Shown piece after piece: positions 2,691 to 58,978 of a stretch of 64,000 bases of DNA. Every line of letters starts with the position of its first letter. Within the stretch, counting starts at the first letter, position 1. The notes below the pieces were generated by a model that was not told the DNA's origin, searched no databases, and was given only the letters and a program-made list of their open reading frames with translations. Both the position numbers and the translations under genes were made by a program. Source of the stretch: Heterodontus francisci (taxonomy: Eukaryota); assembly GCF_036365525.1 (NCBI RefSeq), contig NW_027140807.1, forward strand, positions 1,674,001 through 1,738,000. The letters are read 5' to 3'.

Positions 2691-2771
2691 CAAACTCAGG
2701 AATCCGAGGAACAATTGACTAGAGAATCTACTGAGGTTTCATCCACTATCCACCGGGCTCTGGAAGCTAAG
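2691..2771 (+). pseudogene. 5'-truncated mucin-like exon of the upstream paralog
   Basis: CAAACTCAGGAATCCGAGGAACAA...GGAAGCTAAG|gtatct matches the 96-nt exon family. The acceptor and first ~14 nt are deleted (fused directly to minisatellite), and there is a further 1-nt deletion. Confidence 0.75.
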
Positions 2772-2819
2772 GTATCTGCTTTGTGGGGTTATCATCGCAG
2801 AATCATGGAATCAAAGACT

Positions 2820-4010
2820 GGTTACGGCACAGAAAGTTTCTGTTCAGCCCATCTTCACCGTGCCAGCTCTCTGGCAGTGCAACTCACCTACTCCCACTCC
2901 TGCCATTTTCCTGTCGCCCTGCAGATTTTTTCTGCCATGACAATTTTCCAATTCCCTTTTGAAAGCCTCAATTAAACCTGCCTCCAGCACACTCTCATGC
3001 AGTGCATTTCAGATCCTAACCACTCGCTGTGTGAAAAGGTTTCCCTGCCTCTGTTGTGACTTTTACCACTCACCTAAATGCGTTGCTCTCTAGTTCTGGA
3101 TCCTCCCACCAAGAGGAACAGTTTTTCCCTGACTACTCTGTCCAGTTCCCTCTTGATTATGAACATCTTGCTCAAATCTCGTCTTAATCGTCTCTTCTCC
3201 ACGGAGAACAGCCCCAGCTTCTCCGATCTATTCATGTCACTGACGTCCCTCATCCCGGGAACCATTCTGGTAAATCTTCTCTGCACCCTCTCGAATACCT
3301 TAACATCCTTCCTAAGTATTGACCGCTCTCTCGACCTGTCTTGCCACCTTCAATGATTTGTGCACATGTCCCCCCAGGTCCCTCTGCCCCTGCACCTCCT
3401 TTAGAATTGTAGCCTTTATTTTATATTGCCTCTCGTTCGTCCGACCAAAATGAATCACTTCACAATTCTCTGTGATAAATTTCATTTGCAAGTGTCTGCC
3501 CATCCCACCAGCCTGTCTATGACCTCCTGACGTCTATCACTGTCCTCCTCACAGTTCACAATACAACCAGGTTTTGTGTCATCTGCAGAATTTGAAAGTG
3601 TGCCCTGTACGCCCCAGTCTATGTCATTAATATATACATCAGGAAAAACAGTGGTCTGAGCAATATTAGAGAGCAAAGCACAGATGCACAGAGAATTAGG
3701 AGGGACAGATAACACTGGAGTCGATAAGAGTATCGTATTAGACGGGGGCAGTGGAAGAGGAAAGGAGATAAGCTGTAAATTCAGTTTAATGTGTGTGTAT
3801 ATGGATGCACGGAGAGTGGTAAATAAGGTTGTTGAGCTTCAGGCGCAGATAGCCACGTGGAAATATGATGTTGTGGCAATAACAGGGTCCTGGCTCTAAG
3901 TGGGGCAGGACTGGGTAGTGAATATTCCTGACTACAAGGTGTTCAGGAAAGAGAGGGGAGGAAGGAAAGGAGGAGGGGTATCAGTATTGATTAAGGGGAA
4001 CATTGCAGTG
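2820..4010. mobile_element. Antisense CR1 3' fragment (~2820-3650) followed by a sense CR1 endonuclease fragment (~3780-4010); the pair recurs after most mucin exons
   Basis: QRRFTRMVPG/LGLFSVEKRRL on the - strand and KYDVVAIT/YKVFRKER on the + strand. Homologous copies at ~42590-44070, 45310-47045, 52490-54200 and 55580-56730. Confidence 0.85.
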
Positions 4011-4395
4011 CTGTTTTCTTTTCTCTCTCTTGTTCTCACTCATTCCAGATCTCCCTTACTCTTTTCTGTCTCACTCCTGTCGCCTTCCCTCCTTTTCTCT
4101 CATTCCTGCTCTCTGTTGTTCTCTGACTCCACTTTCCCCCTGTCGTTTCGCTGATCACTTTGATAATCTCCTGAATTTTCTCTGTTAGTTTTTTTTCCTT
4201 GTCGGAGTCGTAACTGATTCTGCAGCCGATGATGTCTGGTGTCTCCCCTCGGTAAAGGCTGGTATACATTGATTCAGTGTGTCGAGGGAGTTAGATTACA
4301 TACGAGAGGAGGTTCTGTGTTAAAACACTTCTGTCCACTCATCCAGCGTTCTGAATCCCAGTGAAATTCCTCTTGTCTTTATTTGATCCTCTCAG

Positions 4396-6225
4396 ACTCG
4401 GGGATTCCGTCTACTCCCGAGGAACCTCCCGACTCCCAGCCTGTTTCTGATGATGGTGGGAACATTTCAGATTCTCCACATTTCAGGAATATTAAATCCC
4501 TCCTCCTGTCTCAGTCTGGCACAAATATATCAGGACCGAGGGCCTCCAAACAGCTGTGTGATCGTTCTGTGTAGGGAAACCCATCGTTCTCACTCTCTCT
4601 CTCTGCCTTGTCTGTGCTGTCAGACAAGAGTTGCAGTCGCTTGTGTTCAGTCTGAGTGGAATCATTGGGAAACACAGAAACGTAAACGTTCAGAAATTCC
4701 TTCAGAAATATCTTTGAGCTTCTTTCTCACATCCCTCTCTCTCTTACTCTCAGTTTTATCTCTGTCTCTCCTTTATCTGCCTTTCACACGCATATATAAA
4801 TATATTTCATTTCTGTAACCGCCTCTCTCCGATGCGGGTCTCAGTTTCTCCAGCTCCCTCTTTCGCCTCACTCTGTCTCCCACTCTCTCTGATGTTCTGT
4901 CTCCCTGTCTGTCTCTCTGACTCTCACTTTCTCTCTCTGTCTCTCTCACAGATGCTCTTTGTCTGTCTCTCTGTCTTTGTCTTTGTCAGAGGGACAGAGA
5001 GCATCAGAGAGAGAGAGAGAGAGTGAGAGTGAGAGACAGAGACAGAGAAAAGGGCAGTGAGACCGGAGTAAACACGGAATGCAAATGATCTCGGGAGATG
5101 GAACAAGAGGCAACGGAGAAGAGAGTGCAGGATAGAGGATGATAACACAGGGAGGGCAGATTAGAGACAAGACGAGTTGAGATAGAGAGAATAACAGAGA
5201 CAGATGAACAAACGAGTGGATGACAAACTGGAGGAAAGAGAGTTTAAATTAGAGAGGCGAGATCATTCGAAATACGTCCCGTGCCCTGTGCTAAACTCTG
5301 GGTGTGTTCAACCTGTTGATGTTGTGACTGTTGTGTTTAGATACCAAATACAAGAGGATTAATGTGAAGATCACTTCAATGACTGATCTGGATGATGAAA
5401 CTGCAAAGAGAATCGTTGTGGAGAGGGTAAGAGACTGCACTGTACTGAGGAGAAACACGGGAGACAACAGATCCTCCCTCTCACTGTCTGTATTCACTGA
5501 ATGGGAACTCCAGGTCATTATTTAAACAGCTCTAATTCCCCTCTGCTTATCAACTGGTCCCCCAGATCAGGCTTGTGAGGGGTTGAATGGGCTTCCTCCT
5601 GAGCCTGTGTGAAAGGCTCGAGAGCGGGTGAGGGGGCTGAATGGCCTTCTCCTGTTCCTGTGTAAGAACTCGAACGAGGGGCTGAATGGCCTCCTCCTGT
5701 TCCTGTGTAACAGACTCGAGGGGATGAATGGCCTCCTCGTTGTACGGTAACCTCTCTCTGATCTTCCCTCTCACTCTCCCCATTCTCTCTTTATGTCCTT
5801 TCTATCTCTGTCTCTTTCTCTGCCTCGCTCACCCACTCTGTATTTCTCTTTCTTTGTCTTTCTTTCTGTCTGTGTCTGTCTCTCCCTCACTGCATCTCTG
5901 ACGACCTCTCGCTCTCACGCCCTCTGTTTCTCTGCCTCTGTCACAATCCCTGTAGCTCTCCCACCCTCCCTCTGCATCTCTCCCTCTATCTGAGTATCTT
6001 TGCCTCACCCTGTCTCTCACTGTCTTGTCCCCACCCTCTCTCCCGATCTCTGTCTGTATGCTCTCTGTCTATTTCTATTCACTCCTCCCCTTGCAGTAAT
6101 ACTCATCGTTTCTCCTCTCTGCGATGCAGATGAAGCACATGTTCCAGGATCAGTGTCCACACACGAAGCTCGAATTGGATCCAGAAGACGTTCAGTGCTC
6201 GGCTAGTGAGCCTGTGGAAGTGTGA
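4396..6225 (+). CDS. 3' end of an upstream tandem paralog: exons 4396-4455, 5341-5426, 6130-6225
   Basis: Spliced translation: DSGIPSTPEEPPDSQPVSDD|DTKYKRINVKITSMTDLDDETAKRIVVER|MKHMFQDQCPHTKLELDPEDVQCSASEPVEV*. Phases 1-1-0, all GT-AG. The 5' exons lie outside the window. Confidence 0.75.
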
Positions 6226-6859
6226 AGGTGTTTGGACATGTCAACAAGCACCCGACACGTGTGATCCAGTCTCTGTGTGTTTTACATCCTCACTCAATCA
6301 CTGTACCATCTTATCTTCACCTTGTTTAACTCAAGGAAATTGTCAGCAAAGGGTTAATCTCCAACTAGAAGTATGCTAATGTTATACTGTAATTGGTGTG
6401 TCTTTATACTGCAGGGGTGTGGGAGCTTTAAGCTATTGCTTTGTTAAATAGAGAAGTACGATCCCATTTGTATACAGTGACCACTGGTCAGCTGAACCCA
6501 GACTAACCTGACAGCTCTGGCCACTTTCAGGATGAAGTGATCTCAGGTTTAATGAGGGAGTTTCTTTAAAGATCTACCATTGAGTAGAGGTCCCTAAGCT
6601 TCATGGAGCTGTCAGCACTGAGAACAGAGGCAAGGAAAACAGTTCGTCCTTGTCCATGGAGAACCTCAGGGTAGATAACATCTTTTAAATTGAGGGTTCA
6701 TGCAGAATGGGGGATTGGTTGATGCTGAACTTTGCAGAATCAAAATATATTGAAAAGGAAAGCTTTCATTGAGTACAAAGCATTTATGTGTGGCATATGT
6801 CAAATGTTTAATAACAAAGGAAGGGAGTTATACTGAGCTCAGGAACCTAATGCTGACAA

Positions 6860-7400
6860 CACTCCATCTCAATAACACCTCTGTGAATGCTTCCATTGTC
6901 TCTGCTCTGCCACACTGCTTGTCTAACATCCAATACTGGATGAGCAGTTATTTTCTCCTACTAAATATTGGGAAGACTGAAGCCATTGTCTGTGGTCCCC
7001 GACACAAATGTCATTCTTGGACCACCGACACCATCTCTGGTACCTGTCTGAAACTGATCAAGACAGTTTTCAGCCTTTGTTGTTGTGTTTGACCCCGAGA
7101 TGAGTTTTCGACCACATATCCACACCATCACCAAGACTGTCCATTTCCACCTCCACACCATCTCTCGACTCCGCCCCTGCTTCAGCTCATCTGCTGCTGG
7201 AACCCTCATCAGTGCCTCTGTTACCTCCAGACTGGACGATACCAATACTCTCCTGGCCAACCGCACATCCTTCACACTTCCTGATCAGATCCTCATACAA
7301 ACATTTGCTGCCTGTGTCTTAACTCACTCCGAACCCTGTTCACCCATAATCCCTGGAACTATTGCCATTCACTGACTCCCTGCTCCTCTCCAATTTCCCA
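6860..7400 (+). mobile_element. L2-clade LINE RT fragment (paralog at ~59610-60120; further L2 pieces at ~10930-11395 and ~26500-27930)
   Basis: CLSNIQYWM..LNIGKTE, FDPEMSF..HI and SVTSRLD motifs. Confidence 0.75.
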
Positions 7401-7934
7401 ATATTAACATCCTGATCAGTCTGTTGAACTGTTGTGAAATGACTCATTGGTCACAACTCTCTGGTGCAACAATGTAAAACGTCTGCAATAAGTGAACATG
7501 GCTGTGTATCTTCCATTGATGGACATTCAAACAAGGAGAGCTGCAGCATGGAAAGGCCTTTTAACGTGTTTGACTCCCTGACCACCCAGTGTGATTGTAA
7601 ATCTGATTGTAAACTGTGTGTTTAAAGTTTTATTGCATTCTCTGTCTGCTCAATATATCTATGAACGCTAAACCTGACCGTCTCAAGAAGCTGATTGATT
7701 TTGCTGGAATGACTTTCCCATCTGATCATGGAAATCCAGTGTTTTTTTGTTCAGGGAGGGAACACTCACTGTTAAATGATTGCTGAGGGCTGAGATCAGA
7801 AGGGATGTGACTGTACATAGTGGGACTGACCAGCATTCCCCAAACCTTGTGCTACTCCATTCTATTCTGGTCTGTGCTTCCACCCTGGATAATCCAGCTC
7901 ATTCAAGGCCTGACAGAGGAAAATGAGAAATCCT

Positions 7935-9550
7935 GGCATTTCAAAAGGCATTTGATACAGTTCCACACATCAGACTTGTGAGCAAACATGTAGCTCTTGG
8001 AATACATGGGACGGTAGCAACATGGATTACGAAATTGGCTGAGTGACAGGAAACAGAGAATAGTGGTTAATGGATGTTTTTCGGACTGGAGAAAGGTTTG
8101 TAGTGGAGTTCCCCAGGGATCAGTGTTGGGACCCTTGCTTTTCCTGATATATATTAATGTCCTCGACCTCGGAGTACAGGGCACAATTTCAAAATTTGCA
8201 GATGATACGAAACTTGGAAGCATTGTGAACTGTGAGGAGGATAGTGTAGAACTTCAAAAGGACAGAGACAAGTTGGTGGAATGGGCAGACAAGTGACAGA
8301 TGAGGTTCAATGTGGAGAAATGTGAAGTGATTAATTTTGTTAGGAAGAACATGGAGAGAAAATATAGAATCGAGGTTACAATTCTAAAGGGGGTGAAGGA
8401 GCAGAGAGACCTGTGTGTTTCTGTGCATAAGTCATTGAAGATGGCAGGACAGGTTGAGAGAGTGGTTGATAAAGCATACAGTATACTGGGCTATATTAAT
8501 AGGGGCATAGATTACAAGAGCAAGGAAGTTATGTTGAACTCGTATAAGACACTAGTTTGTCCTCAGCTGGAGTATTGCCTCCAATTCTGGGTGTTGCACT
8601 TGAGAAAAGATGTGAGGGCATTTGAGAGAGTACAGACGAGATTCACAAGAATGGTTCCAGGGTTGAGGAATTTCAGTTATGAAGATAGATTGGAGAAGTT
8701 CGGACTGTTTTCCTTGGAGAAGAGAAGGCTGGGAGGTGATTTGAGAGAGATATTCAAAATCATGAGGGGCCTGGACAGAGTAGACACTGTTCCCACTCGT
8801 GAAATTATCGAGAACGAGAGGGCACAGATTTAAAGTATTTGGTAAGAGAAGCAAAAGTGACATGGGGAAACAAGTTTTCATGCAGCGAATGGTTAAGGTC
8901 TGGGATGCGCTGCCTGGGAACATGGTGGAGGCAGATTCAACTGAAACATTTAAAATAAAATTAGACAGTTACATGAAATGGAAGAATTTGCAGGGTTACA
9001 GGAAGAGGCCGGGGGAGTGGAACTGAGGGCGTTGCTCTTTCAGAGAGCCGGTGGGGAGACGATGGGCCGAATGGCCTCCTTCGGCATGGTCACAATTCTG
9101 TGATTCTTTGATTATTATGAGGAATGTTTGAAGAGGTTGGGCAGATACTCATTGGAGTTTAGAAAAATGAGCCACGTAAGATTCTGAGGGGGCTTGACTG
9201 GGTAGATGCTGAGTGGATGTTCCTTCTCGTTTGGGAATCTAGAACTAGGTGTAACAATTTCAGAATAAGGGGGTCTCCCCTTTAAGATGGAGATGAGGCG
9301 GATATTTTTCTCTCAGAGAATTGTGAGTCTGTGGAACTCCGTTCCCTGGAGAGCAACGGAGGCTGGGTCATTGAATATATTCAAGCCTGACTTAGACAGA
9401 TTTTGATTCGACAAGGGAGTCGGGGTTATCGAGGGCAGAAAGGAAAGTGGAGTTAAAGCGACAATCAGATCAGCCATGATCTTATAGAATGGCTGAGCAG
9501 GCTCGAGGGGCCGAATGGCCTACTCCTTGCTCCCATTTCGTATAATCTTA
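7935..9550 (+). mobile_element. CR1 LINE 3' fragments (paralogous copy at ~60740-61625)
   Basis: GVPQGSVLGPLLF, KFADDTKLG, PQLEYC and GLFSLEKRRL motifs with stops; CR1-type 3' UTR GATGGGCCGAATGGCCTCCT. Confidence 0.9.
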
Positions 9551-9974
9551 CTGACTGCCCAATTCAATATCGGGGTAGTTAAAGTCTCAAATCATCACAT
9601 AATTTTTTTCACCCCTCAGTTATTTCTTTGCAGCTCTGCTCCTCCATGTCCTTCCTGCTCTATGGCAGCTGATAAAATACCTGCAAAGTAAAAATGTTTG
9701 TCAGAAGATGCTCACAGTCGGAGAACAGTGGACTGTTCATATCAGAGGCACAGATAAGATCTCCCACAGGCCACAGGTACACATTCAGCAACATATGCAA
9801 ACAACAATGAGCAAAGCCAGAGAGCTGGGAGAAGGCTTTTGTAGGCAGTACACACGACACTGTGAGGCCCCTGAGCAGATATCAATGTCCCTGCTGCGGC
9901 CACCAGTGGTTGAACGATTAAGGTCGGGGTTGCTCAAAAGCCCAGTATTAGAGGAGTGCAGAGATTGCGGGAGG

Positions 9975-10930
9975 TTGTCGGGGCTGGAGGACGTTACAGA
10001 GGGAGGGAGGGATTTAGGTGCAGGTGGAGGTTACAGAAATAGGGAGGGCTCGAGGTGCTGGAGGTGGTAAAAGATATGGAGGGCTCTAGGGACTGGAGGA
10101 GGTTTCAGAGATAGGGGGGATGTTGGGGCTGGAGGCGGACACAGAGATAGGGAGGGTTTTCGGGCTGGAGGCTGTTACAGAGTTAGGGAGGGTTGCAATG
10201 GCTGGAGGAGGTTACAGAGATAGGGATGGTTGTTGAGACTGCAGGAAGTTTCAGATATAAGGAGGGTTGTCAGGGCTGGAGGAAGTTAAAGAGATATCGA
10301 GAGTTGGAGGGACTGAAGGGGGTTACATCGATAGGGAGTGTTGTCGGGCTGGAGGCAGTTACAGAGATAGGGAGGGTTGCAATAGCTGGAGTAGGTTATT
10401 GAGACAAGGGAGGGTTGTAGGTGCTGGAGGACGTTACAGAGGAAGCGAGGGCATTAGGGGATGGAGGCAGTTACAGAGATAGGGAGGGTTGTAGGAACTG
10501 GAGGTGGTTACAGCGATAGAGAATTTGCAGAGACTGGTGGAGGTTACAGAGATAGGGAGGTTTGCAGAGACTGGTGGAGGTTACAGAGATAGGGAGGGTT
10601 GTAGAGACTGGAGGAGGTTACAGAGATAGGGAGGGTTGTAGAGACTGGTGGAGGTTACAGAGATAGGGAGGGTTGGAGAGACTGGTGGAGGTTACAGAGA
10701 TAGGGAGGGTTGGAGAGACTGGTGGAGGTTACAGAGATAGGGAGGGTTGTAGAGACTGGTGGAGATTACAGAGATAGGGAGGGTTGTAGAGACTGGAGGA
10801 GGTTACAGAGATAGGGAGGGTTGTAGAGACTGGTGGAGGTTACAGAGATAGGGAGGGTTGCAGAGACTGGTGGAGGTTACAGAGATAGGGAGGGTTGTAG
10901 AGACTGGTGGAGATTACAGAGATAGGAAGG
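9975..10930 (+). repeat. 36-37-bp tandem repeat embedded in an L2 3' region (second array at 22742-23352)
   Basis: Unit GGAGGTTACAGAGATAGGGAGGGTTGTAG(A/G)GACTGG(T); homogeneous over ~10530-10925. Confidence 0.9.
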
Positions 10931-11412
10931 GGAAAGGCCATGGGGGGATTTGAGGACAAGGACGAGAATTTTAAAATGTGGATGTTGCTTGACCGGGAGC
11001 CAATGTCGGGCAGCGAGCACAGGAGTGACAGGGGAACGGGACTTGGAGTAGCTGAAGACACAGGCAGAAGAGTTTTAGATTACCTCAGGTTTACAGAAAG
11101 TGGGAGAGCATCAGGAGTGTCTTGACATTGTGAAGTCTAGAGCTGACAAAGGCGTGAATGAAGGTTTCAGCCGCAGATCAGCTGAAACAGGGGCGAGTTT
11201 GGGTGATGTTACAGAGGTGGAAATGGGCAGCGTTAGTGATGGTGCCTACATGAGGTCAGAAGCCCATTTCGGCATCAAATGTGACACCAGCCTTTCGAAC
11301 AGACTGGCTTAAACTCAGACTGCTGCCAGGGAGAGGGATAGAGTCAGTAGTTAAAGAGTGGAGTTTGGAGCGGAAACTGGAAACAATAGCTTCAGTCATG
11401 AGGGCAGGACTG

Positions 11413-11661
11413 AGGGAGTGCTGCACTGTCAGAGGGTCAGTACTGAGGGCGTTTGCACTGTCAGAGGGTCTGTACTGAGAGAGTGCTGCACTGTCAGAGG
11501 GTCAGTACTGAGTGAGTGCTGCACTGTCAGAGGGTCAGTACTGAGGGAGTGCTGCACTGTCAGAGGGTCAGTACTGAGGGCGTGTTGCACTGTCAGAGGG
11601 TCTGTACTGAGTGAGTGCTGCACTGTCAGAGGGTCAGTACTGAGTGAGTGCTGCACTGTCA
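11413..11661 (+). repeat. 33-bp tandem repeat (~7.5 copies) amplified from the SINE 5' part
   Basis: Unit GAGGGAGTGCTGCACTGTCAGAGGGTCAGTACT; produces the spurious RECCTVRGSVL ORF repeat. Confidence 0.92.
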
Positions 11662-11975
11662 GGATGCCCTCTTTCAGATGTCACATTAAACAGAGACTCC
11701 ATCCTCTTACTCCCGTGGATATAAACAGTCCCATTGGACTATTTTGAAGAACAGCAGGGGAGTTCTCCCTGGTGTCCTGGCCAATAATTATCCCTCCATC
11801 AACGTCATTAAAACAGATTACCTGGTCATTCTCACATTGCTGTTTGTGGGAGCTTGCTGTGCACAAATCAGCTGCCATGATTCTTACATTACAACAGTGA
11901 CTGCACTGCAGCAAAACAAGCATTTCATTGGCTGTGACGCACTTTGGCAGGTGGTCGTGAGGGACGATATAAAAT
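11645..11975 (+). mobile_element. Deu-domain SINE fragment (SacSINE1/AmnSINE-like)
   Basis: GAGTGCTGCACTGTC..TGCC.TCTTTC.GATG...TTAAAC, GGGGAGTTCTCCCTGGTGTCCTGGCCAATA and GCTGTTTGTGGGA.CTTGCTGTGC segments, recognised from memory. Confidence 0.7.
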
Positions 11976-17340: not shown

Positions 17341-17379
17341 TGTTTTTGTTGAACTGCTCCGTCTCTCTGAGTCACTGTG
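17341..17379 (-). other. 23-bp-spacer recombination signal sequence of the TRBV segment
   Basis: CACAGTG-actcagagagacggagcagttca (23 nt)-ACAAAAACA directly after CAWS. Confidence 0.95.
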
Positions 17380-18911: not shown

Positions 18912-18950
18912 AGTTTTTGCCATGTTTCCTTGCATTCTAGTTACACTGTG
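18912..18950 (-). other. 23-bp-spacer RSS of the second V segment
   Basis: CACAGTG-taactagaatgcaaggaaacatg (23 nt)-GCAAAAACT, a few codons after YYC. Confidence 0.88.
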
Positions 18951-47300: not shown

Positions 47301-50300
47301 GAGTTGGATATAGTGACTGTGGGCAGTGGGACATAGTGATTGAGGGTACTGTGATAAAGTGACTGAGGGGAGTATGATACAGTCACTGAGGGGAGTGGGA
47401 TGCAGCGACTGAGGGTTGTGTGATAGTGTGACTGTGGGGAGTGGGATACAGTGACTGAGAGGAGTGTGATACAGTGACTGAGAGTGTGATGCAGTGACTG
47501 AGGGGCGTGTGATGCAGTGACTGAGGGGAGTGTAATACAGCGACTGAGGAGAGTCTGAGACAGCGACTGAGGGGAGTGAGATACAGCGACTGGCGTGTGC
47601 GTGATACAGTGACTGAGGTGAGTGTGATACAGTGAGTGAGGGGAGTGTGATAAAGGGACTGAGGTGATTGTGATTCAGTGACTGAGGGGAATGTGATACA
47701 GTGACTGAGGGGAGTGTGACATAGGTACTGAGGTGAGTGTGATACAGTGACTGAGGGGAGTGTGACGCAGCAATATATTGAACAGGATGGAAGATAATGG
47801 TTTTATATAGATTGTTATCTGTCATTCTCCTGACACGAGCACCATCCTGTTGACCTGTTGTGTTTTTCTCCATGTCTCACTTGGCAATGTCTCCCTCCCT
47901 TTATTACAGAACCCGTGACTTCCCAAACTCAGGAATCCGAGGAACAATCGACTAGAGAATCGACTGAGGTTTCATCCTCCACCCCAGCGGGCTCTGGAAG
48001 CTCAGGTACCTGTCTTGTGGGGTCATCATTGCAGAATCATGGAATCAGAGACTGGTTACAGCACAGAAAGAGCCCGTTGAGCCCATCGTCACTGTGACAG
48101 CTCCATGCCTGTGCAACTCACCTACTCCCACTCCTGCTATTTCCCCGTCGCACTGCAGATTGTTTCTCCAATGACAATTTTCCAATTCCCTTTTGAAAGC
48201 CTCAATTGAACCTACCTCCAGCACACTCTCAGGCAGTGCATTTCAGATCCTAACCACACGCTGTGTGAAAAAGTTTTACTGTCTCTGTTGTAATTTTTGC
48301 CACTCACCTAAAACCGGTGCCCTCTAGTTCTGGATCCTCCCACCAATGTGACTTAGGGGAGTGGGGCATAGTTAGTGGGGGAGAGAGATGTAGTGACTGA
48401 GGGGAGAAGGTTGCACTGACCGAGGTGAGTGGGATATAGTGACTGAGGGAAGTGGGACATTGTGACTGAGGGCAGTGGGATATAGTGAGTGAGGGGAGAG
48501 GGATGTAGTGACTGAGGGGAGTGGGACATAGTGACTGAGGGGAGTGGGATGTAGTTACTGAGGCCAGTTGGACATAGTGATCGAGGGCAGTGGGATGTCG
48601 TGACTGAGGGGAGTGAGATATAGTGAGTGAGGGGAGAAGGATATAGTGACTGAGGGGAGTGGGACATAGTGACTGAAGGGTGTGGGATATAGTTACTGAG
48701 GGCAGTAGGACATAGTGATTGAGGGCAGTCGGATATAGTCATCGAGGGGTGCAGAACATAGTGACTGAGGGCAGTGGAACATAATGAATGAGGACAGTGG
48801 GACATATTGTCTGAGGGCAGTGGGATATAGTCATTGAGGGCAGTGGCACATAGTGACTGAGGGCAGTGGGACATAGTGACTGAGCTCAGTGGGATATAGT
48901 CATTGAGGGCAGTGGGACATAGTCACTGAGATGAGTGGGATATAGTGACTGATGGGATAGGGATGCAGTGATTGAGGGCAGTGGGATATAGTGACTGAGG
49001 GCAGTGGTATGTATTCACTGCGCGGAGTGGGATGTGGTAGCTGCGGAGAGTGGGATGCAGTGATTGAGGTGAGTGGGATACAGTGACTGACGGGAGTGGG
49101 ATACAGCGACTGAGGGTAGTATGATACAGTGACTGAGGGGAGTGTGATACAGTGTCTGAGGGGAGAATGATACAGTCACTGAGGGGAGTGTGTTGCAGCG
49201 ACTGAGGGTAGTGTAATCCAGTGACAGAGGGAGTGTGAAACAGTGACAGAGGGGAGCGTGATGCAGTGACTGAGGGGATTGTGATGGAGACTGAGGGGAG
49301 CGTGACGCCGTGACTGAGGGGAGTGTGACATAGTTATGTAGTGAACAGGATGGAAGATAATGGTTTTATAAAGATTGTTATCTGTCATTCTCCTCACACG
49401 AGCACCATCCTGTTGACCTGATGTGTTTTTCTCCATGTCTCACTTTGCAATGTCTCCCTCCCTTTGTTACAGAACCCGTGACTTCCCAAACTCAGGAATC
49501 CGAGGAACAATCGACTGGAGAATCTACTGAGGTTTCATCCTCCACCCCAGCGGGCTCTGGAAGCTCAGGTACCTGTCTTGTGGGGTTATCATCGCAGAAT
49601 CATGGTATCAGAGACTGGTTACAGCACAGGAAGAGGCCATTGAGCCCATCGTCACTGTGACAGCTCTATGCCTGTGCAACTCACCTACTCCTACTCCTGC
49701 CATTTCCCCGTCGCACTGCAGATTGTTTCTCCGATGACAATTTTCCAATTCCCTTTTGAAAGCCTCAATTAAACCTGCCTCCAGCACACTCTCAGGCAGT
49801 GCATTTCAGATCCTAACCACACGCTGTGTGAAAAGATTTTCCAGTCTCTCTTGTGACTTTTACCACTCACCTAAAACCGGTGCCCTCTAGTTCTGGACCC
49901 TCGCACCAATGGGACTTAGGGGAGTGGGACATAGTTACTGAGGGGAGAGGGATGCAGTGACTGAGGGGAGAAGGTTGCACTGACCGAGGGGAGAGGGATA
50001 TAGTGACTGAGGGCAGTGGGACATAATGAGTGAGGGCAGTGGGATAAACTGAGTGAGGGGAGAGGGATGTAGTGACTGAGGGGAGTGGGACATAGTGACT
50101 GAGGGGAGTGGGATGTAGTTTCTGAGGGAAGTTGGACATAGTGATTGAGGGCAGTGGGATGTAGTGACTGAGGGGAGTGAGACATAGTGAATGAGGCAGT
50201 GGGATATAGTGACTGAGGGGAGTGAGACATAGTGAATGAGGCAGTGGGATATAGTGACTGAGGGGAGTGGGATATAGATACTGAGGGCCGTAGGACATCG

Positions 50301-53300
50301 TGATTGAGCGCTGTGGGATATAGTCATTGAGGGGCGAGGGATATAGTGACTGAGGGGAGTGGGACATAGTGACTGAGGGCAGTGGGACATAGTGACTGAG
50401 GGCAGTGGGATATAGTGAGTGAGGGGAGAGGGATGTAGTGACTGAGGGGAGTGGGACATAGTGACTTAGGGTAGTGGGATATAGTGAGTGAGGGGAGAGG
50501 GATGTAGTTACTGAGGGCAGTTGGACATAGTGATTGAGGGCAGTGGGATGTCGTGACTGAGGGGAGTGAGATATAGTGAATGAGGGGAGTGGGATATAGT
50601 GAGTGTGGGGAGAGGGATATAGTGACTGAGGGGAGTGGGACACAGTGACTGAGGGGAGTGGGATATAGTTACTGAGGGCAGTAGGACATAGTGATTGAGG
50701 GCAGTGGGATATAGTCATCGAGGGGTGCGGAACATAGTGACTGAGCAGAGTGGGACATAATGAATGAGGACAGTGGGACATATTGACTCAGGGCAGTGGG
50801 ATATAGGCATTGAGGGGAGTGGGATATAGTCATTGAGGGCAGTGGGACATAGTGACTGAGGGCAGTGGGACATAGTCACTGAGGTGAGTGGGATATAGTG
50901 ACTGATGGGATATGGATGCAGTAATTGAGGGCAGCGTGAGATAGTCACTGAGCAGAGTGGGTCGTAGTGACTGAGGGCAGTGGGATATAGTGACTGAGGG
51001 CAGTGGTATGTATTCACTGTGCGGAGTGGGATGTGGTAACTGCGGAGAGTGGGATGCAGTGACTGAGGTGAGTGGGAGACAGTGACTGAGGGGAGTGGGA
51101 TGTAGTCACTGAGCGGAGTGGGACGTCGTGACTGAGGGCAGTGGGATATAGTGAGTGAGGGGAGAGGGATGTAGTTACTGAGGGCAGTTGGACATAGTGA
51201 TTGAGGGCAGTGGGATGTCGTGACTGAGGGGAGTGAGATATAGTGAATGAGGGGAGTGGGATATAGTGAGTGTGGGGAGAGGGATATAGTGACTGAGGGG
51301 AGTGGGACACAGTGACTGAGGGGAGTGGGATATAGTTACTGAGGGCAGTAGGACATAGTGATTGAGGGCAGTGGGATATAGTCATCGAGGGGTGCGGAAC
51401 ATAGTGACTGAGCAGAGTGGGACATAATGAATGAGGACAGTGGGACATATTGACTCAGGGCAGTGGGATATAGGCATTGAGGGGAGTGGGATATAGTCAT
51501 TGAGGGCAGTGGGACATAGTGACTGAGGGCAGTGGGACATAGTCACTGAGGTGAGTGAGATATAGTGACTGATGGGATATGGATGCAGTAACTGAGGGCA
51601 GCGTGAGATAGTCACTGAGCAGAGTGGGTCGTAGTGACTGAGGGCAGTGGGATATAGTGACTGAGGGCAGTGGTATGTATTCACTGTGCGGAGTGGGATG
51701 TGGTAACTGCGGAGAGTGGGATGCAGTGACTGAGGTGAGTGGGAGACAGTGACTGAGGGGAGTGGGATGTAGTCACTGAGCGGAGTGGGACGTCGTGACT
51801 GAGGGCAGTGGGATATAGTGACTGAGGGCAGTGGTATGTATTCACGGCACGGAATGGGATGTGGTAACTGCGGAGAGTGGGATGCAGTGACTGAGGTGAG
51901 TGGGATACAGTGACTGAGGGGAGTGGGATACAGCGACTGAGGGTAGTATGATACAGTGACTGAGGTGAGTGGGATACAGTGACTGAGGGGAGTGGGATAC
52001 AGCGACTGAGGGTAGTATGATACAGTGTCTGAGGGGAGTGTGATACAGTGTCTGAGGGGAGTATGATACAGTCACTGAGGGGAGTGTGATGCAGCGACTG
52101 AGGGTAGTGTGAAACAGTGACAGAGGGGAGTGTGATGCAGTGACTGAGGGGAGTGTGATGGAGACTGAGGGGAGCGTGACGCCGTGACTGAGGGGAGTGT
52201 GACATAGTAATGTCGTGAACAGGATGGAAGATAATGGTTTTATAAAGATTGTTATCTGTCAATCTCCTCACATGAGCACCATCCTGTTGACCTGATGTGT
52301 TTTCATCCATGTCTCACTTTCCAATGTCTCCCTCCCTTTATTACAGAACCCGTGACTTCCCAAACTCAGGAATACGAGGAACAATCGACTAAAGCATCTA
52401 CTGAGGTTTCATCCTCCACCCCAGCGGGCTCTGGAAGCTCAGGTACCTGCCTTGTGGGGTCATCATCGCAGAATCATGGTATCAGAGACTGGTTACAGCA
52501 CAGAAAGAGGCCATTGAGCCCATCATCACCGTGACAGCTCTATTCCTGAGCAACTCACCTACTCCCACTCCTGCCATTTCCCCATCTCCCTGCAGATTGT
52601 TTCTCCTATGATAATTATCAAATTCACTTTTGAAAGCCTCAATTGAACCTACCTCCAGTACACTCTCAGGCAGTGCATTCCAGATCCTAACCAATCGCTG
52701 TGTGAAAAGGTTTTCCTGTCTCTGTTGCTACTTTTACCACTCACTTAAAACCGGTGTCCTCTGGTTCTGGATTCTCCCACCGATGGGAACAGTTTCTCCC
52801 TGTCTACTCTGTCCACATCCCTCTTGATTTTGAACACCTCGATCAAATCTTCTCTTAATCTTCTCTTCTCCAGGGGAAAGAGCCCCAGCTTCTCCGATCA
52901 ATCCATGTAACTGACGTCCCTCATCCCGGGAACCATTCTTGTAAATCATCTCTGAACCCTCTCGAATACCTTCACATCATTCCTAAGTATTAACCGCTCT
53001 CTCGACCTGTCTTGCCACCTTCAATGATCTGTGCACATGTACCCCCAGGTCCCTCTGCCCCTGCACCCCCTTTACAATTGTATCCTTTATTTTATATTGC
53101 CTCTCCTCCTTCCTCCGACCAAAATGCATCACTTCACAATTCTCTGCATTAAATTTCATCTGTCACTTGCCTGCCCATTCCACAGGTCTGTCTATGTCCA
53201 CTTGAAGTCCATCACTATCCTCCTCACTGTTCACAATACTTCCAGGTCTTGTGCCCTCCACAAATTTTGAAATTCTGCCCTGTACACACAAATGCAACAC

Positions 53301-56300
53301 ATACATATACATCAAGAAAAACAGGGTTCGAGCAATATTAAAGAGTAAAACACAGATGCACAGAGAATTAGGAGGGACAGATAACATTGGAGTAGAAAAG
53401 AGTAACGTATTGGACTGGGACAGTGCAAGAGGGATGGTGATGAGCTGAAAATTCAGTTTAATGTGTGTGTATATGGATGGACGGAGAGTGGTAAATAAGG
53501 TTGTTGAGCTGCAGGTGCAGATAGCCACGTGGAAATATGCTGTTGTGGCAATAACCGATTCCTGGTTCGAAGAGAGGCAGGACTGGGTAGTGAATATTCC
53601 TGACTACTAGCTGTTCAGGAAAGAGAGGGAAGCAAGGAAAGGAGGCGGGTTTCAGTATTGATTAAGGGGAGCATTACAGTGCTGGAAAGAGATGATGTCG
53701 CAGAGGAACCAAGGATAGAATCCATCAGATTAAAGTGAAACAACGGAAGAAATACCATGACCTTTCTGGGTCTATTTTATAGGCCAACAACTGGTGGGAA
53801 AGTTATAGAGGAACATATTTGCATAGAGCAACCAAGAGATGCAAGAGTTAAAGTGTTGATCGATCGTTGGGCTATAATTATCTGAATATAGTCTGGAATA
53901 GTAATAGTGTAAACGGCAGAGTGGGACAAGAGTTTCTCGAGTGTGTTCAGGAGAATTTCTGACGTCAGTTTGTTTCCAGTCCAACGAGGAAGGAGGCATT
54001 GCTGGATCTGATTCTGGGAAATGAAGTGGGACAAGTGAATTTAGGGTCCACCGTGGAACATTTGGGTACAGTGACCATTGGACCATGCGGTTGAAGTTGG
54101 CACTGGAAAAGGACAAGGAGAAATACGGAGGAAAGATAATTCATTGAGGGAGAACCAATCTCAATAGAGTGAGAACAGATCTGACCCAAATAATCTGGAA
54201 TCACATTACAGAGTCCCACACTGTGACGCCTGAAGTGCTCAGTCTCAGAGACACATCCAGTCTCTTAATGATGGAGTGTGGGGCAATGATAGAGGGCAGT
54301 GGGATATAGTGACTGAGGGGAGTGGGATGTAATGACTGAGCGGAGTGGGATCTCGTGACTGAGGGGGATGGGATGCAGTGACCGAGGGGAGTTGGATGTA
54401 GTGACTGAGGGCAGTGGGACACAATGACTGAGGGCAATGGGACAAAGTGACTGAGGGGAGTGAGATTTAGTGACTGAAGGGAGTGCGATGCATTGACTGA
54501 ACGGAGTGGGATGCAGTGACTGAGGAGATTGGGATCCAGTGACTGCGGAGCGTGGGATACAGTGTCTGAGGGAAATGTGATACAGTGACTGAGGGGAGTG
54601 TGATGCAGCAACTGTGGGGAGTGGGATACAGTGACTGAGGGAAGTGTGATACAGTTGCTGAGGGGAGTGGGATACAGTGACTGAGGGAAGTGTGATACAG
54701 TGACTGAGGGAAGTGTGATACAGTTACTGAGGGAAGAGTGATACAATTGCTGAGGGGAGTGTGATACAGTGACTGAGGGAAGTGTGATGCAGCGACTGAG
54801 GGGAGGGTGATGCAGCGACTGAGCGGAGTGTGATACAGTGACTGAGGGAAGTGCGATACAGTGAGAAAGGGGACTGTGATACAGTGATTGAGGGAGTGTG
54901 ACATAGTGACTGAGGGGAGCATGATACAATGACTGAGGGGAGTGTGATACAGTGACTGAGGGGAGTGTGATACAGTGACTGAGGGAATGGGATACAGTGA
55001 CTGAGGGGATGGTATACAGTGACTGAGGGGAGTGTGATACATTGACTGAGGGGAGTGGGATACAGCGGCTGAGATAAGTGTGATGCAGTGATTGAGGTGA
55101 GTGTGATGCAGTGACTGAGGGAAGTGGGATACAGTGAATGAGAGGAGTGGGATACCGCGACTGAGGGGAATGGGATGCAACGACTAATGGGAGTGTGATA
55201 CAGTGACTGAGGAGAGCTTGATAGAGTGACTGAGCAGAGTGTGACAGAGACTGAGGGGAGTGTGACGCCGTGACATCGGGGAGTTTGACACAGTAATGCA
55301 GTGAACAGGATGGAAGAGTATGGTTTTATAAAGACTGCTATCTGACATTCTCCTGACACTAGTACCATCCTGTTGACCGGTCGTGTTTTACTCCATATCT
55401 CTCTCTGCAATGTCTCCCTCCCTTTATTACAGAACCCGTGATTTTCCAAACTCAGGCATCCGAGGAACAATCGACTAGAGAATCTACTGAGGTTTCATCC
55501 TCTATCCCAGCGGGCTCTGGAAGCTCAGGTACCTGCCTTGTGGGGTTATCATCGCAGAATCATGGATTCATCGACTGGTTACAGCCCAGAAAGAGGCCGT
55601 TCAGCCCATCTTCACCGTGCCAGCTCTCAGCCTGAGCAACTCACCGACTCCCACTCCTGCCATTTCCCCATCGCACTGCAGATTGTTTCTCCTATGATAA
55701 TTATCCAATTCCCTTTTGAAAGCCTCAATTGAACCTGCCTCCAGTACACTCTCGGGCAGTGCATTTCAGATCCTAACCACTCGCTGTGTGAAAAGGTTTT
55801 CCTGTCTCTTTTGCTACTTTTACCACTCACCTAAAACCGGTGTCCACTGGTTCTGGATCCTCCCACCAATGGGAACAGTTTCTCCCTGTCTGCTCTGTCC
55901 ACATCCCTCGTGATTTTGAACACCTTGATCAAATCTCCTCTTCATCTTCTCTTCTGCAGGAAGAACAGCCACAGCTTCTCTGATCTATTCATGGAACTGA
56001 CGTCCCTCATCCCGGGAACCATTCTCGTAAATCTTTTCCGCACCCTCTCGAATACCTTAACATCCTTCCTATGTATTCACTACTCTCTCGACATGTCTTA
56101 CCACCTCTGCCCCTGAACCTCCTTTACAATTGTATCCTTTATTTTATATTGCCTCTCCTCCTTCTTCCTACCAAAATGAATCACTTCACAATTCTCTGCA
56201 TTAAATTTCATCTGCCACTTGCTTGCCCATCCCACAGGTCTGTCTATGTCAACTTGAAGTCCATCACTTTCCTCCTCACTGTTCACAATACTTCCAGGTC

Positions 56301-58978
56301 TTGTGCTCACTACAAATTATGAAATTCTGCCCTGTACACACAAGTGTAACTCATTAATATCCATCAAGAAGAACAGGGTTCGAGCAACATTAAAAAGTAA
56401 GACACAGATGCATAGAGAATTCTGAGGGACAGGTTGCAAGGCAGTAAAATAGAATAACGTATTAGATGGGGTCAGTGTAAGAAGGAAGTTATTAACCTCT
56501 AACTTCTGTTTAATGTGTGTGGATATGAATGCCCGGAGAGTGTTAAATAAGGTTGGTGAGCTGCAGGCGCAAATAACCATGTGGAAATATGTTGTTGTGG
56601 CAATAACAGAGTCCTGGCTCTAAGAGGGGCAGGACTGGGCAGTGAATATTCCTGACTACAAGGTGTTCAGGAAAGAGAGGGAAGGAAGGAAAGGAGGAGG
56701 GGTATCAATACTGATTAAGGGGAACATTACACTGCTGTTTTCTTTTCTCTCTCTTGCTCTCACTCACTACAGATCTCCCTCACTCTTTTCTCTATCACCC
56801 CTGTCGCCCTCCCTGCTTTTCTCTCTCACTCCTGCTCTCTCTTGTTCTCTGACTCCACTTTCCCCCTCACGGCATTCTTCCTCTCCTTTTGCCGATCACT
56901 TTGATAATCTGCCGAGTTTTCTCTGTTAGTTTTTTTTCCTGTCGGAGTAGTAACTGATTCTGCAGACAATGATGTCTGGTGTCTCCCCTCGGTAATGGCT
57001 GGTACACATTGATTCAGTGTGTAAAGGGAGTGAGATTACATACGAGAAAAGGTTCTGTGTGAAAACAGTTCCCTCCACTCATCCAGCGTTCCGAATCCCA
57101 GTGAAATTCCTCTTGTCTTTATTTGATCCTCTCAGACTCGGGGTCTCGTCTACTCCTGAGGAACCTCCCACTCCCAGCCTATTTCTGATGACGGTGGGAA
57201 CATTTCAGATTCTACGCATTTCTGAATATGAAATCCCTCCTCCCGTCTCAGTCTGGCACAAATCTATCAGGTTAGAGTGTCTCCAAACAGATGTGTGATC
57301 GTTCTGTGTCGGAAAACCCATCGTTCTCTCTCTCTCTCTCTCTCTCTCTGTGCCTTGTCTGTGCTGTCGGACAAGAGTTGCAGTCACGTTGTATTCAGTG
57401 TGAGTGGAATCATTGGGAAAAGACTGAAACGTAAACCTTCAGAAATTCCTTCAGAAATATCTTTGAGCTTCTATCTCGCATCCCTCTCTCTGTAACTCTC
57501 AGTTTTATCTCTGTCGCTCTGTTTCTCCTTTATCTGCCTTTCACACGCATATATAAATATATTTCATTTCTGTAGCCGCCTTTCTCCTTCTATGTGGCTC
57601 TCAGTTTCTCCAGCTCCCTCTTTCGCCTCACTCTGTCTCTCACTTTCTCTCTCTGATGTTCTGTCTCCCTGTCTGTCTCTCTGACTCTCACTTTCTCTCT
57701 CTCTCACAGATGCTCTTTGTCTCTCTGTCTTTGTCTTTGTCAGAGGGACAGAGAGCATCAGAGAGAGAGAGAGAGTGAGAGTGATCGACAGAGACAGAGT
57801 AAAGGGCAGTGAGACCGGAGTAAACACGGAATGCAAATGATCTAGGGAGATGGAACAAGGAGGCAACAGAGAAGAGAGTGCAGGATAGAGGATGATAACA
57901 CAGGGAGGGCAGATCAGAGACAAGACGAGTTGAGATAGAGAGAATAACAGAGACAGATGAACAAACGAGTGGATGACAAACTGGAGGAAAGAGAGTTTAA
58001 ATTAGAGAGGAGAGATCATTCGAAATACGTCCCGTGCCCTGTGCTAAACTCTGGGTGTGTTCAACCTGTTGATGTTGTGACTGTTGTGTTTAGATACCAA
58101 ATACAAGAGGATTAATGTGAAGATCACTTCAATGACTGATCTGGATTATGAAACTGCAAAGAGAATCGTTGTGGAGAGGGTGAGAGACTGCACGGTACTG
58201 AGGAGAAACACGGGAGACAACAGATCCTCCCTCTCACTGTCTGTATTCACTGAATGGGAATTCCAGCTCAGATATTTAAACAGCTCTAATTCCACCTCTG
58301 CTTATCTTCTGGTCCCCAGTTCAGGCTTGTGAGGGGCTGAATGGGCCTCCTCCTAAGCCTGTGTGAAAGGCTCGAGAGGGGGTGAGGGGGCTGAATGGCC
58401 TTCTCCTGTTCCCGTGTAAGAACTCGAACGAGGGGTTGAATGGCCTCTCCTGTTCCTGTATAACAGACTCGAGGGGATGAATGGCCTCCTCGTTGTATGG
58501 TAACCTCTCTCTGATCTTCCCTCTCACTCTCCCCATTCTCGCTTTATGTCCTTTCTATCTCTGTCTCTTTCTCTGCCTCGCTCACCCACTCTGTATTTCT
58601 CTTTCTTTGTCTTTCTTTCTGTCTGTGCCTGTCTCTCCCTCACTGCATCTCTGACGACCTCTCGCTCTCACACCCTCTGTTTCTCTACCTCTGTCTCAAT
58701 CCCTGGAGCTCTCCTAACCTCCCTCTCCATCTCTCCCTCTATCTGAGTATCTTTTCCTCTCCCTGTCCCTCACTGTCTTGTCCCCACCCTCTCTCCCGAT
58801 CTCTGTCTGTATCCTCTCTGTCTCTTTCTATTCACTGCTCCCCTTGCATTAATATTCATCGTTTCTCCTCTCTGCGATGCAGGTGAAGCACATGTTCCAG
58901 GATCAGTGTCCACACACGAAGCTCGAATTGGATCCAGAAGACGTTCAGTGCTCGGCTAGTGAGCCTGTGGAAGTGTGA
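26363..58978 (+). CDS. Secreted GP2/uromodulin-like protein: signal peptide + 2 D8C/D10C decoy modules + 7 mucin-like 32-aa repeats + short C-terminal tail; no ZP domain (multi-exon, ~547-567 aa)
   Basis: Manual GT-AG exon chain with consistent phases: 26363-26396, 28328-28466, 28619-28695, 28790-28954, 35280-35415, 35568-35644, 35739-35900, 36304-36399, 42445-42540, 45167-45262, 47910-48005, 49473-49568, 52347-52442, 55433-55528, (57136-57193, frameshifted), 58094-58179, 58883-58978. Open from ATG to TGA (1644 nt, 547 aa) if 57136-57193 is skipped. DPC.N.T.LD.PWRS, CD..L..GWYRF, GWL.G.HP, V.RTVC, I.IKNC..YFVY.L and YCT match the GP2/UMOD Cys-rich module. Confidence 0.85.
28328..28954 (+). 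CDS. Decoy module 1 (D8C/D10C), exons 28328-28466, 28619-28695, 28790-28954
   Basis: Spliced translation: YSALTDPCVNHTVLDQPWRSIDCTGTECSGQVKCDRYLVQGWYRFNSSGGWKIPDTVVPDSHCSTKRPGWLQGSHPSVGQGEVTRTVCFNRDGNRCHRTQKIKIKNCSSYFVYALKPPPVCNAAYCT. Phases 1-2-1-1, all GT-AG, 10 Cys. Confidence 0.92.
29225..34285 (-). mobile_element. Older CR1-superfamily LINE fragment (29225-30360 + 34140-34285) interrupted by the RTE insertion
   Basis: Decayed ORF2-like peptide IPHSFMTIKPGDQTWFNEKCRRAC...; sequence continues across the RTE TSD. Confidence 0.65.
30361..34139 (-). mobile_element. Full-length or near full-length RTE-clade LINE (APE endonuclease + RT + C-terminal zinc-finger-like motif) with 13-bp TSD
   Basis: Single frame 33612-30421 with APE motifs (SWNVRT, LQETR, GDFNA, DTDH), RT motifs (GVKQGC, LFADD) and CSTC..HSRIGLYSHSRRC. 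Only two in-frame stops (32584-32586, 32422-32424). GAA-like tail at 30361; TSD CACTCCTACCAAT at 30348-30360 and 34140-34152. Confidence 0.95.
35280..35900 (+). CDS. Decoy module 2 (D8C/D10C), exons 35280-35415, 35568-35644, 35739-35900
   Basis: Spliced translation: DSAFTDPCVNHTVLDQPWRSIDCDDTGSGQVKCDDNLHFGWYRFKSSVGWKIPETAVPHHRCSTNVTGWLQGSHPSVGQGEVTRTVCLHWGTNHCYKVHEIKIKNCSSYFVYELKSLFRCAAYCT. Same intron positions and lengths (152, 94 nt) as module 1; 9 Cys. Confidence 0.92.
36304..36399 (+). CDS. Mucin-like 96-nt exon 1 (DPETVATEEPEEQTTRESTRGSSSTPAVSGTS)
   Basis: cctttattacag| acceptor, |gtaccc donor, phase 1-1, open. Confidence 0.8.
36690..39205 (-). mobile_element. Young 5'-truncated CR1 LINE (end of endonuclease + RT)
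   Basis: About 730 uninterrupted codons with GDFNFPNIDW, KSPGPDG, YRPVSLTS, GVPQGSVLGP, KFADD and RPHLEYC; premature stop at 37020; (TTCTTTG)n 3' tail at ~36690-36712; inserted within the 23-bp minisatellite. Confidence 0.95.
40102..40197 (+). pseudogene. Diverged 96-nt mucin-like exon with inactivated acceptor (pseudo-exon)
   Basis: Homologous to 36304-36399 (PETSTTSRTKEQTTPQSIEKAPSNPIDTFTS) but the acceptor reads cctttattacaC instead of cctttattacaG; weak donor gtgtca. Confidence 0.65.
40425..41130 (+). mobile_element. CR1 3' fragment
   Basis: ELYKTLVWPQLEY and FTLEQRRLRGDLIEVYKIM motifs; 3' UTR GATGGGCCGAAGGGCCTGT. Confidence 0.85.
42445..42540 (+). CDS. Mucin-like 96-nt exon (EPMTSQTQESEEQSTGESIEVSSSILVGSGTL)
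   Basis: tctaacag| ... |gtatct, phase 1-1, open. Confidence 0.75.
45167..45262 (+). CDS. Mucin-like 96-nt exon (EPVTYETQESEEQSTAESTEGPSCIPAGSGSS)
   Basis: ttattacag| ... |gtatct, phase 1-1, open. Confidence 0.8.
47910..48005 (+). CDS. Mucin-like 96-nt exon (EPVTSQTQESEEQSTRESTEVSSSTPAGSGSS)
   Basis: ttattacag| ... |gtacct, phase 1-1, open. Confidence 0.8.
49473..49568 (+). CDS. Mucin-like 96-nt exon (EPVTSQTQESEEQSTGESTEVSSSTPAGSGSS)
   Basis: ttgttacag| ... |gtacct, phase 1-1, open. Confidence 0.8.
52347..52442 (+). CDS. Mucin-like 96-nt exon (EPVTSQTQEYEEQSTKASTEVSSSTPAGSGSS)
   Basis: ttattacag| ... |gtacct, phase 1-1, open. Confidence 0.8.
55433..55528 (+). CDS. Mucin-like 96-nt exon (EPVIFQTQASEEQSTRESTEVSSSIPAGSGSS)
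   Basis: ttattacag| ... |gtacct, phase 1-1, open. Confidence 0.8.
57136..57193 (+). CDS. Pro/Ser/Asp linker exon, 58 nt (2 nt shorter than the paralogous 4396-4455 exon; frameshifted as assembled)
   Basis: ctctcag| ... |gtggga. Adding one G to the G-run and one C to the C-run restores DSGVSSTPEEPPHSQPISDD. Confidence 0.55.
58094..58978 (+). CDS. C-terminal exons 58094-58179 and 58883-58978 (DTKYKRINVKITSMTDLDYETAKRIVVER|VKHMFQDQCPHTKLELDPEDVQCSASEPVEV*)
   Basis: gtgtttag| phase 1, |gtgaga phase 0; long pyrimidine tract + gatgcag| acceptor; TGA at 58976-58978; near-identical paralogous exons at 5341-5426 and 6130-6225. Confidence 0.75.

Follow-up and report, generated by a model that had tools for sequence, protein, structure and literature searches.

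In the literature on GP2 and uromodulin (UMOD) consulted here, the D10C decoy module is described only as a branch of ZP-module filaments (UMOD, GP2) which trap fimbriated bacteria. This decoy module is defined as a disulfide-stapled beta-hairpin together with a ten-cysteine D10C domain; in GP2, the oligomannose is attached at N65, and when this residue is mutated the decoy module is impaired in its interaction with the lectin domain of FimH (PMC8930769). The ten canonical cysteines of the GP2/UMOD decoy module pair as C1-C8, C2-C9, C3-C6, C4-C10 and C5-C7. The closest studied family, the zebrafish omcins (omc1-15), consists of tandemly expanded multi-D10C genes and was called teleost-specific by its authors; omc5, which has five D10C domains, EGF IV, a ZP module and a predicted glycosylphosphatidylinositol (GPI) anchor, is induced by E. 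coli and its loss lowers resistance (PMC11415648). The mucosal anti-bacterial role proposed for the omcins has experimental support for omc5 only. Here we analyze a stretch of 64,000 nucleotides (nt) from the horn shark Heterodontus francisci (contig NW_027140807.1, positions 1,674,001 to 1,738,000; the whole stretch is called the window), which carries a gene with two D10C heads, a repeat stalk and a short conserved tail. With a probability of about one half, we read this gene as a member of a tandem elasmobranch family whose product is a soluble ZP-less D10C protein working as a non-polymerising decoy or agglutinin. Such a protein would be secreted in soluble, heavily glycosylated form at the surface of an epithelium, where either the glycan of its heads would be offered to microbial lectins or ligands would be bound through variable loops, the stalk serving as a spacer.

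Gene structure and D10C heads

We found one intact gene on the plus strand between 26363 and 58978, with 16 open exons which add up to 1650 nt and 549 codons (Table 1). Stop-to-stop pieces of the plus strand at 28.3-29.0 kb and 35.25-35.9 kb resemble uromodulin D8C, and the remaining exons, that is the signal peptide, all stalk exons and the two tail exons, were located by tblastn of the horn-shark protein P0010 on the window. All 16 exons have canonical AG/GT borders and compatible phases in the exon table, and the signal peptide of exon 1 is identical in another horn-shark protein, P0156. The gene and its architecture are real, and the predicted product of 549 residues is made up of a short signal peptide, two D10C domains, seven 32-residue acidic repeats and a small C-terminal domain with two cysteines. 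A preliminary description of this DNA had proposed a complete gene with a signal peptide, two D10C modules, seven Ser/Thr/Glu repeats and a short tail in one exon; all of this held, including the reading frame, the stop and the end coordinate, except that the tail has 59 residues and is divided between two exons. That the two heads are alternative cassettes, or the outcome of a two-gene fusion, was ruled out by the single signal-peptide exon, the symmetric phases and the module types, which are common to paralogs and species.

Table 1. Position and properties of the features found in the window
Feature	Coordinates	Strand	Remarks
Exon 1	26363-26396	+	Start codon and 11-residue hydrophobic signal peptide; ends in phase 1 at GTGAGT donor; from tblastn of P0010 and exon table
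D10C module 1, three exons	28328-28466, 28619-28695, 28790-28954	+	381 nt, phase 1-1, 10 Cys, N-H-T sequon after first Cys
D10C module 2, three exons	35274-35415, 35568-35644, 35739-35900	+	381 nt, phase 1-1, 9 Cys, N-H-T sequon as in module 1
Seven Ser/Thr/Glu stalk exons	36304-36399, 42445-42540, 45167-45262, 47910-48005, 49473-49568, 52347-52442, 55433-55528	+	96 nt each, open, phase 1-1
Divergent eighth stalk exon	40102-40197	+	Open frame; acceptor AG replaced by AC
Dead copy of 60-nt cassette exon	~57136-57193	+	Two 1-nt deletions; skipped in RNA contig (joint 55528/58094)
Tail exon 1	58094-58179	+	86 nt, phase 1 to 0; strand-loop-helix start of conserved C-terminal domain; RNA joints at both borders
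Last coding exon	58883-58978	+	31 codons and TGA; stop 58976-58978; 3' untranslated region (3'UTR) then extends beyond 59400
3' end of upstream paralog	2692-6225	+	Last stalk exon 2692-2787 (truncated, frameshifted); intact 60-nt cassette exon 4396-4455; tail exons 5341-5426 and 6130-6225
V pseudogene 1, TRBV-like	17342-17675 (V 17380-17675; recombination signal 17342-17379)	-	Conserved Trp41 codon is TAG; CACAGTG heptamer, 23-nt spacer and nonamer intact
V pseudogene 2, weakly heavy-chain-V-like	18913-19262 (V 18951-19262; recombination signal 18913-18950)	-	In-frame stop after framework region 2; Cys23 lost; CACAGTG heptamer and 23-nt-spacer signal intact
23-bp satellite arrays	3-2678, 34287-35166, 36487-36687, 39208-39912, 41586-42306, 44174-45027, 47130-47765, 48348-49334, 49913-52208, 54292-55294		One orientation throughout

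The exons of the window were searched singly, while the paralog P0156, a horn-shark protein of 360 residues with a signal peptide, two heads, one stalk repeat and a tail, was used as a proxy for the spliced protein in the fold and hydrophobicity work. Pfam family PF23283 (D8C_UMOD) was matched above its cut-off of 27 bits by the third exon of module 1 (33.5 bits, E 4.9e-8) as well as of module 2 (35 bits, E 1.6e-8), and by P0156 with 75 bits (E 5e-21). An AlphaFold2 model of P0156 based on a 60-sequence alignment had a mean predicted local distance difference test score (pLDDT) of 84, with values above 90 in both heads and of 69-89 in the tail, and one helix at residues 319-337. Its top match in Foldseek was the human GP2 decoy module 7P6R (E 7e-15, root-mean-square deviation 1.3 Å over 124 columns, 40% identity), followed by uromodulin, and a sequence search of the PDB returned the same four GP2/uromodulin entries at E ~1e-24. 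The model thus supports a GP2/UMOD D10C fold for the heads.

Like the human decoy modules (PDB 7P6R, 7PFP and 7Q3N; PMC8930769), the shark protein has a D10C fold, a signal peptide for secretion and a sequon placed two residues after Cys1, at the position of GP2 Asn65. In the PDB sequence alignment the shark N-H-T sequon falls on N65-Y-T of GP2 in both modules, while the column of UMOD Asn275 is occupied by Ala or Glu; the W-L-x-G-S/T-H-P motif corresponds to UMOD Asn232 and not to Asn275 (numbering as in PMC8930769, and alignment). Unlike GP2 and UMOD, the shark protein has no beta-hairpin before the D10C domain, no EGF domains, no ZP module, and hence no filament, and no GPI signal; instead it carries two tandem heads, a stalk of acidic repeats and a small C-terminal domain outside Pfam. 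The heads differ from those of GP2 and UMOD also in their cysteines, as the alignment retains only 8 of the 10 canonical ones, C3 and one of C6/C7 being absent, with one or two extra cysteines in the loops. Disulfides C1-C8, C2-C9, C4-C10 and C5-C7 are still possible; module 1 has gained a pair of cysteines in the loop after Cys1 and module 2 a single one. As to the hairpin of the decoy module, at most ~8 residues lie between the signal peptide and Cys1 of module 1, module 2 abuts module 1, and there is no Cx-Cy pair.

A decoy function is a reasonable thing to infer for such heads; the GP2-type sequon that they retain speaks for it, and their lack of the hairpin against it. An elasmobranch family with the same head and no polymerising part would mean that the head is able to function in soluble form, or was originally used in that way. 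The shark protein would then offer a natural minimal construct with which to study the role of D10C, and the retained Asn65 sequon makes a test of the glycan decoy direct.

Missing ZP and anchor parts, transcripts and range of the family

Queries with frog uromodulin, which contains EGF and ZP domains, matched only the D8C exons within the window. Outside the signal peptide P0156 has no hydrophobic segment and its last 20 residues are hydrophilic, and in six relatives Pfam found no domain other than D8C. The architecture without ZP, EGF, transmembrane and GPI parts is well supported, in agreement with the absence of ZP, transmembrane and GPI segments noted in the preliminary description. We compared contigs from three small runs (X1-X3) of one public sample with positions 55400-59400 and found that they cover exons and repeats and not the unique intron DNA of this region. 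They splice the stalk to the tail, with joints at 55528/58094 (GT..AG after resolving a 2-nt ambiguity) and 58179/58883, and an 861-nt contig runs from 58884 to past 59397, through the stop codon into a long 3'UTR, so that no further splicing was seen in the contigs for more than 500 nt past the stop.

It is unlikely, though by no means a negligible prospect, that the copy at 26363-58978 is a silent or decaying duplicate and that function resides in other members of the family only. The RNA contigs are mostly 95-99% alike to the window, with paralog-type letters in the tail exon and 3'UTR (58147 T>G, 58982 A>T and 59040 A>T), two cassette exons are already dead, the heads match neither of the two annotated horn-shark proteins compared (P0156 and P0108), and no protein was flagged in the search as encoded by the window. 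However, the 16 exons that the gene needs all have open frames, canonical splice sites and phases that fit together; the frame also survives the skipping of the dead exons, which are symmetric cassettes; and rare variants are lost in contigs, and the runs were small.

Two further contigs at the tail may be recorded here. A contig from X2 (307 nt, depth 6.5) lies on 57801-58071 and may represent an alternative exon, intron retention or antisense transcription. In X1, a low-depth contig on 58150-58263 continues past the donor of tail exon 1 and is joined at 58263 to 58880, the ends being non-canonical (CA..TG); this contig may be an artefact or derived from a paralog.

A HMMER search with one head exon against 1.84 billion representatives gave 1143 matches at E <= 0.001, the closest of which were horn-shark 'uncharacterized proteins'. 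At E <= 1e-10 there were 95 relatives, almost all from elasmobranchs; according to precomputed Pfam annotation nearly all of them contain D8C only, and ZP occurs solely in two frog uromodulins. Relatives with D8C only come from more than 15 elasmobranch species, the same architecture is present in at least 10 shark and at least 7 ray or skate genera, and the proteins are annotated variously as uncharacterized, uromodulin-like, GP2-like, OIT3-like or mucin-5AC-like. Both architecture and tail are shared by uncharacterised elasmobranch proteins such as P0156 and P0010 of Heterodontus francisci, P0154 of Mustelus asterias and P0165 of Rhincodon typus. Uncharacterised D10C arrays were also found in corals, Nematostella, scallop, amphioxus and teleosts. 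Our literature search on D8C/D10C or uromodulin-like proteins in sharks, skates and rays found no study of the elasmobranch family, which is a new architectural variant of D10C proteins, present in databases and unstudied. It resembles the omcins in being a lineage-specific tandem expansion in a fish with several D10C domains per gene, but differs from them in the lack of ZP, EGF and GPI parts, in its stalk and tail, and in its situation among T-cell receptor (TCR) V segments.

Stalk, tail and head variation

The stalk consists of seven 32-residue tandem repeats with 27% Ser, 16% Glu, 15% Thr and 7% Pro (Ser and Thr together 42%), the Pro and Glu contents being set here beside the Pro/Thr/Ser-rich (PTS) pattern of mucins. 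Six of the seven repeats contain one or two S-x-E motifs, the type of site used by the secretory-pathway kinase FAM20C. It is conceivable, though improbable, that the protein is secreted for a purpose which has nothing to do with microbes, either structural or physiological (in mucus, egg case or urinary matrix) or as a calcium- or mineral-binding acidic phosphoprotein, its D10C heads being protein-protein modules as in liver OIT3/LZP. The Ser, Glu and Pro contents of the stalk and its S-x-E motifs would suit such a role; moreover, the D8C protein LZP/OIT3 is reported to have a metabolic, non-immune role (PMC7909667), and D10C arrays with unknown roles exist in corals, scallop and amphioxus. 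On the other hand, the GP2 N65-type sequon is retained in both heads, the variation between paralogs is located in surface loops, and the tandem copy number is high, as in the zebrafish omcins that affect bacterial resistance.

Six of the seven stalk exons sit in tandem cassettes of 1.6-3.1 kb, each made of 23-bp satellite, the exon and an old long interspersed nuclear element (LINE) fragment, with the exon flanked by the other two, which in a self-comparison of the window start at 42449, 45182, 47924, 49487, 52361 and 55447. The length of the stalk would be tuned by gain, loss and skipping of these cassette exons, and such a change would be easy because satellite-flanked cassettes allow unequal crossing-over. 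An exon-per-repeat stalk in satellite-flanked cassettes would be a clear case of change in repeat number through unequal crossing-over and exon skipping. The eighth stalk exon at 40102-40197 is probably skipped, judging by its AC acceptor; its counterpart is included in the paralog model P0108. Acceptor and donor are conserved in the alignment of the stalk exons. An origin of the stalk exon from a LINE 3'UTR was ruled out, as the LINE fragment begins ~200 nt downstream of it and the alignment to the first stalk exon is confined to the exon with its splice sites. The satellite, with 72-90% matches within its arrays, fills the stalk introns and gives rise to long spurious open reading frames on the minus strand.

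Among sharks and rays the tail is conserved as three subtypes, which have a common strand-loop-helix-strand pattern. It matched no Pfam family, either as window exons or in six relatives, and a search of a protein atlas with the tail returned generic strand-helix-strand look-alikes only, below useful scores. One profile-profile comparison of subtypes A and B gave P = 0.0044 at an HH-suite probability of 3% in the expected register, which is weak and only suggestive. A two-copy complex prediction for residues 298-360 of P0156 scored 0.10 against a mark of 0.32, which is evidence neither way on dimerisation.

Modules 1 and 2 are ~85% identical at the DNA level. When eight horn-shark modules were aligned exon by exon, the framework was invariant and four or five loops were variable, those after Cys2, before Cys4, between Cys5 and Cys7 and before Cys9 taking 3-6 states. 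Most of the differences between module 1 and module 2 are common to paralogs, and hence the two-head arrangement and those differences are old. Between the two heads of this gene the nonsynonymous divergence (dN) is 0.18 and the synonymous divergence (dS) 0.30, a ratio of ~0.6. Identity between the heads is mosaic, amounting to 98% in the 94-nt intron that separates the second and third exons and to 50-80% in the flanking loop-coding exon parts. As dS in the exons is higher than the divergence of the intron, simple positive selection is no more likely than patchy gene conversion. The preliminary description had spoken of an expanding family with diversified heads; the family is indeed multi-copy, but from the dN/dS ratio and the age of the differences the diversification of the heads is only suggestive. 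Over ~150 nt, 28680-28835 against 35630-35785, from the end of the second exon across the full 94-nt intron into the third exon, the heads are 98-100% identical, which suggests a short tract of gene conversion or constraint on the intron.

The same variation raises the idea that the heads are direct recognition domains, in which the four or five variable loops and not a presented glycan bind the ligands, and that the tandem family is a germline repertoire of specificities. The invariant framework with its 3-6 loop states and the loop-coding exon patches, which are less alike between modules (72-80%) than the 98%-identical intron, would fit this view. But we regard it as quite improbable: the dN/dS ratio and the excess of exon dS over intron divergence point to mosaic gene conversion and not to clean positive selection, many head differences are specific to the module type and common to paralogs, and no D10C domain has a known ligand besides its glycan.

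Returning to the soluble decoy or agglutinin, several observations weigh against it. Disulfide C3-C6 is missing from the shark heads and the number of cysteines in module 2 is odd; the hairpin which shelters the oligomannose glycan in GP2/UMOD is absent, and the shark glycan may therefore be processed to complex type. The acidic, Pro-poor stalk with its S-x-E motifs would fit a secreted phosphoprotein as well as a mucin, and the dN/dS ratio between the heads is below 1. Furthermore, the 5' junctions, from signal peptide to head, head to head and head to stalk, are based on database gene models from several species and not on reads, and, given the paralog-type letters of the contigs, what is proven is that the family has spliced transcripts ending at this stop and not that this very copy has them.

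V pseudogenes, upstream paralog and repeat setting

Trypsinogen (PRSS) genes in the mammalian TRB locus are unrelated secreted-protein genes which were tandemly duplicated with, and are interleaved among, TCR V segments. In the window, the preliminary description had reported two V pseudogenes with recombination signals on the strand opposite to the D10C genes, and this stood up to analysis: exactly two heptamer/23-nt spacer/nonamer signals are present where chance would give 0.02, each of them on the minus strand, and both V pseudogenes lie between the upstream paralog and the intact gene. V pseudogene 1 has its best PDB matches mostly among TCR beta chains (E down to 2.7e-11), while those of V pseudogene 2 are weak (E >= 0.015) and mostly immunoglobulin heavy chains. 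The stop at Trp41 in the first, and the stop together with the loss of Cys23 in the second, make both of them pseudogenes despite intact recombination signals. A likely leader exon of V pseudogene 1 was noticed at 17838-17872 on the minus strand, with an ATG start, a GTAAGG donor and TGA at codon 10, which would be a second defect.

In line with the claim that the genes lie in or beside an antigen-receptor locus, V segments with recombination signals are found between two members, in what may be either a TRB or a TRA/TRD locus. The shark arrangement differs from that of the trypsinogens in the protein family concerned and in its V segments, of which those in the window are pseudogenes and lie on the opposite strand. 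It would be a second example, after the trypsinogens, of secreted-protein genes carried in an antigen-receptor locus, and it is a practical warning for the annotation of shark TCR loci. The simplest reading of the position among V segments is that neighbours were amplified together, which need not mean a functional link. A much broader view, which we consider very doubtful, would see in the ZP-less D10C genes a germline-diversified repertoire of soluble recognition or decoy proteins, with loops varied by mosaic gene conversion and stalks tuned by cassettes, co-amplified with TCR V segments under pathogen-driven selection in one recombination-prone region; if true, an adaptive-receptor locus would harbour an innate partner system.

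The 3' end of a paralog, which had been placed ~52.7 kb upstream, was confirmed (Table 1) at an offset of 52,756 bases. It belongs to a 6.1-kb duplication (2691-8827 against 55447-61635) found by self-comparison of the window, with an identity of ~91% which rises to 98-99% around the tail exons. Each of its tail exons differs by one residue from that of the gene at 26363-58978, and the tail of P0156 is identical to that of this upstream paralog. The intron just upstream of tail exon 1 (57801-58093, and 5050-5340 in the upstream copy) is 96-99% identical between the two gene copies.

The window as a whole is repeat-rich vertebrate DNA; besides ~10 arrays of the 23-bp satellite, it contains LINEs of two families, which have long open frames, and minisatellites of 37 bp and 33 bp. 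One LINE, at 30421-33612 on the minus strand, is located in the intron separating the two heads and has two long open frames, of 342 residues (endonuclease-like) and 649 residues (reverse transcriptase); a decayed inverted copy with 89% identity to it is present at the end of the window (61859-63985, plus strand). A LINE of the second type at 37020-39272 on the minus strand has a 750-residue open frame with an endonuclease remnant and reverse transcriptase; it has the 23-bp satellite on either side, and the open frame begins within satellite-derived sequence. In the spacer with the V pseudogenes, the 37-bp minisatellite, which was also scored at 74 and 111 bp, occurs twice (9969-10931 and 22743-23360), and the same spacer contains the single occurrence of a separate 33-bp repeat at 11395-11662.

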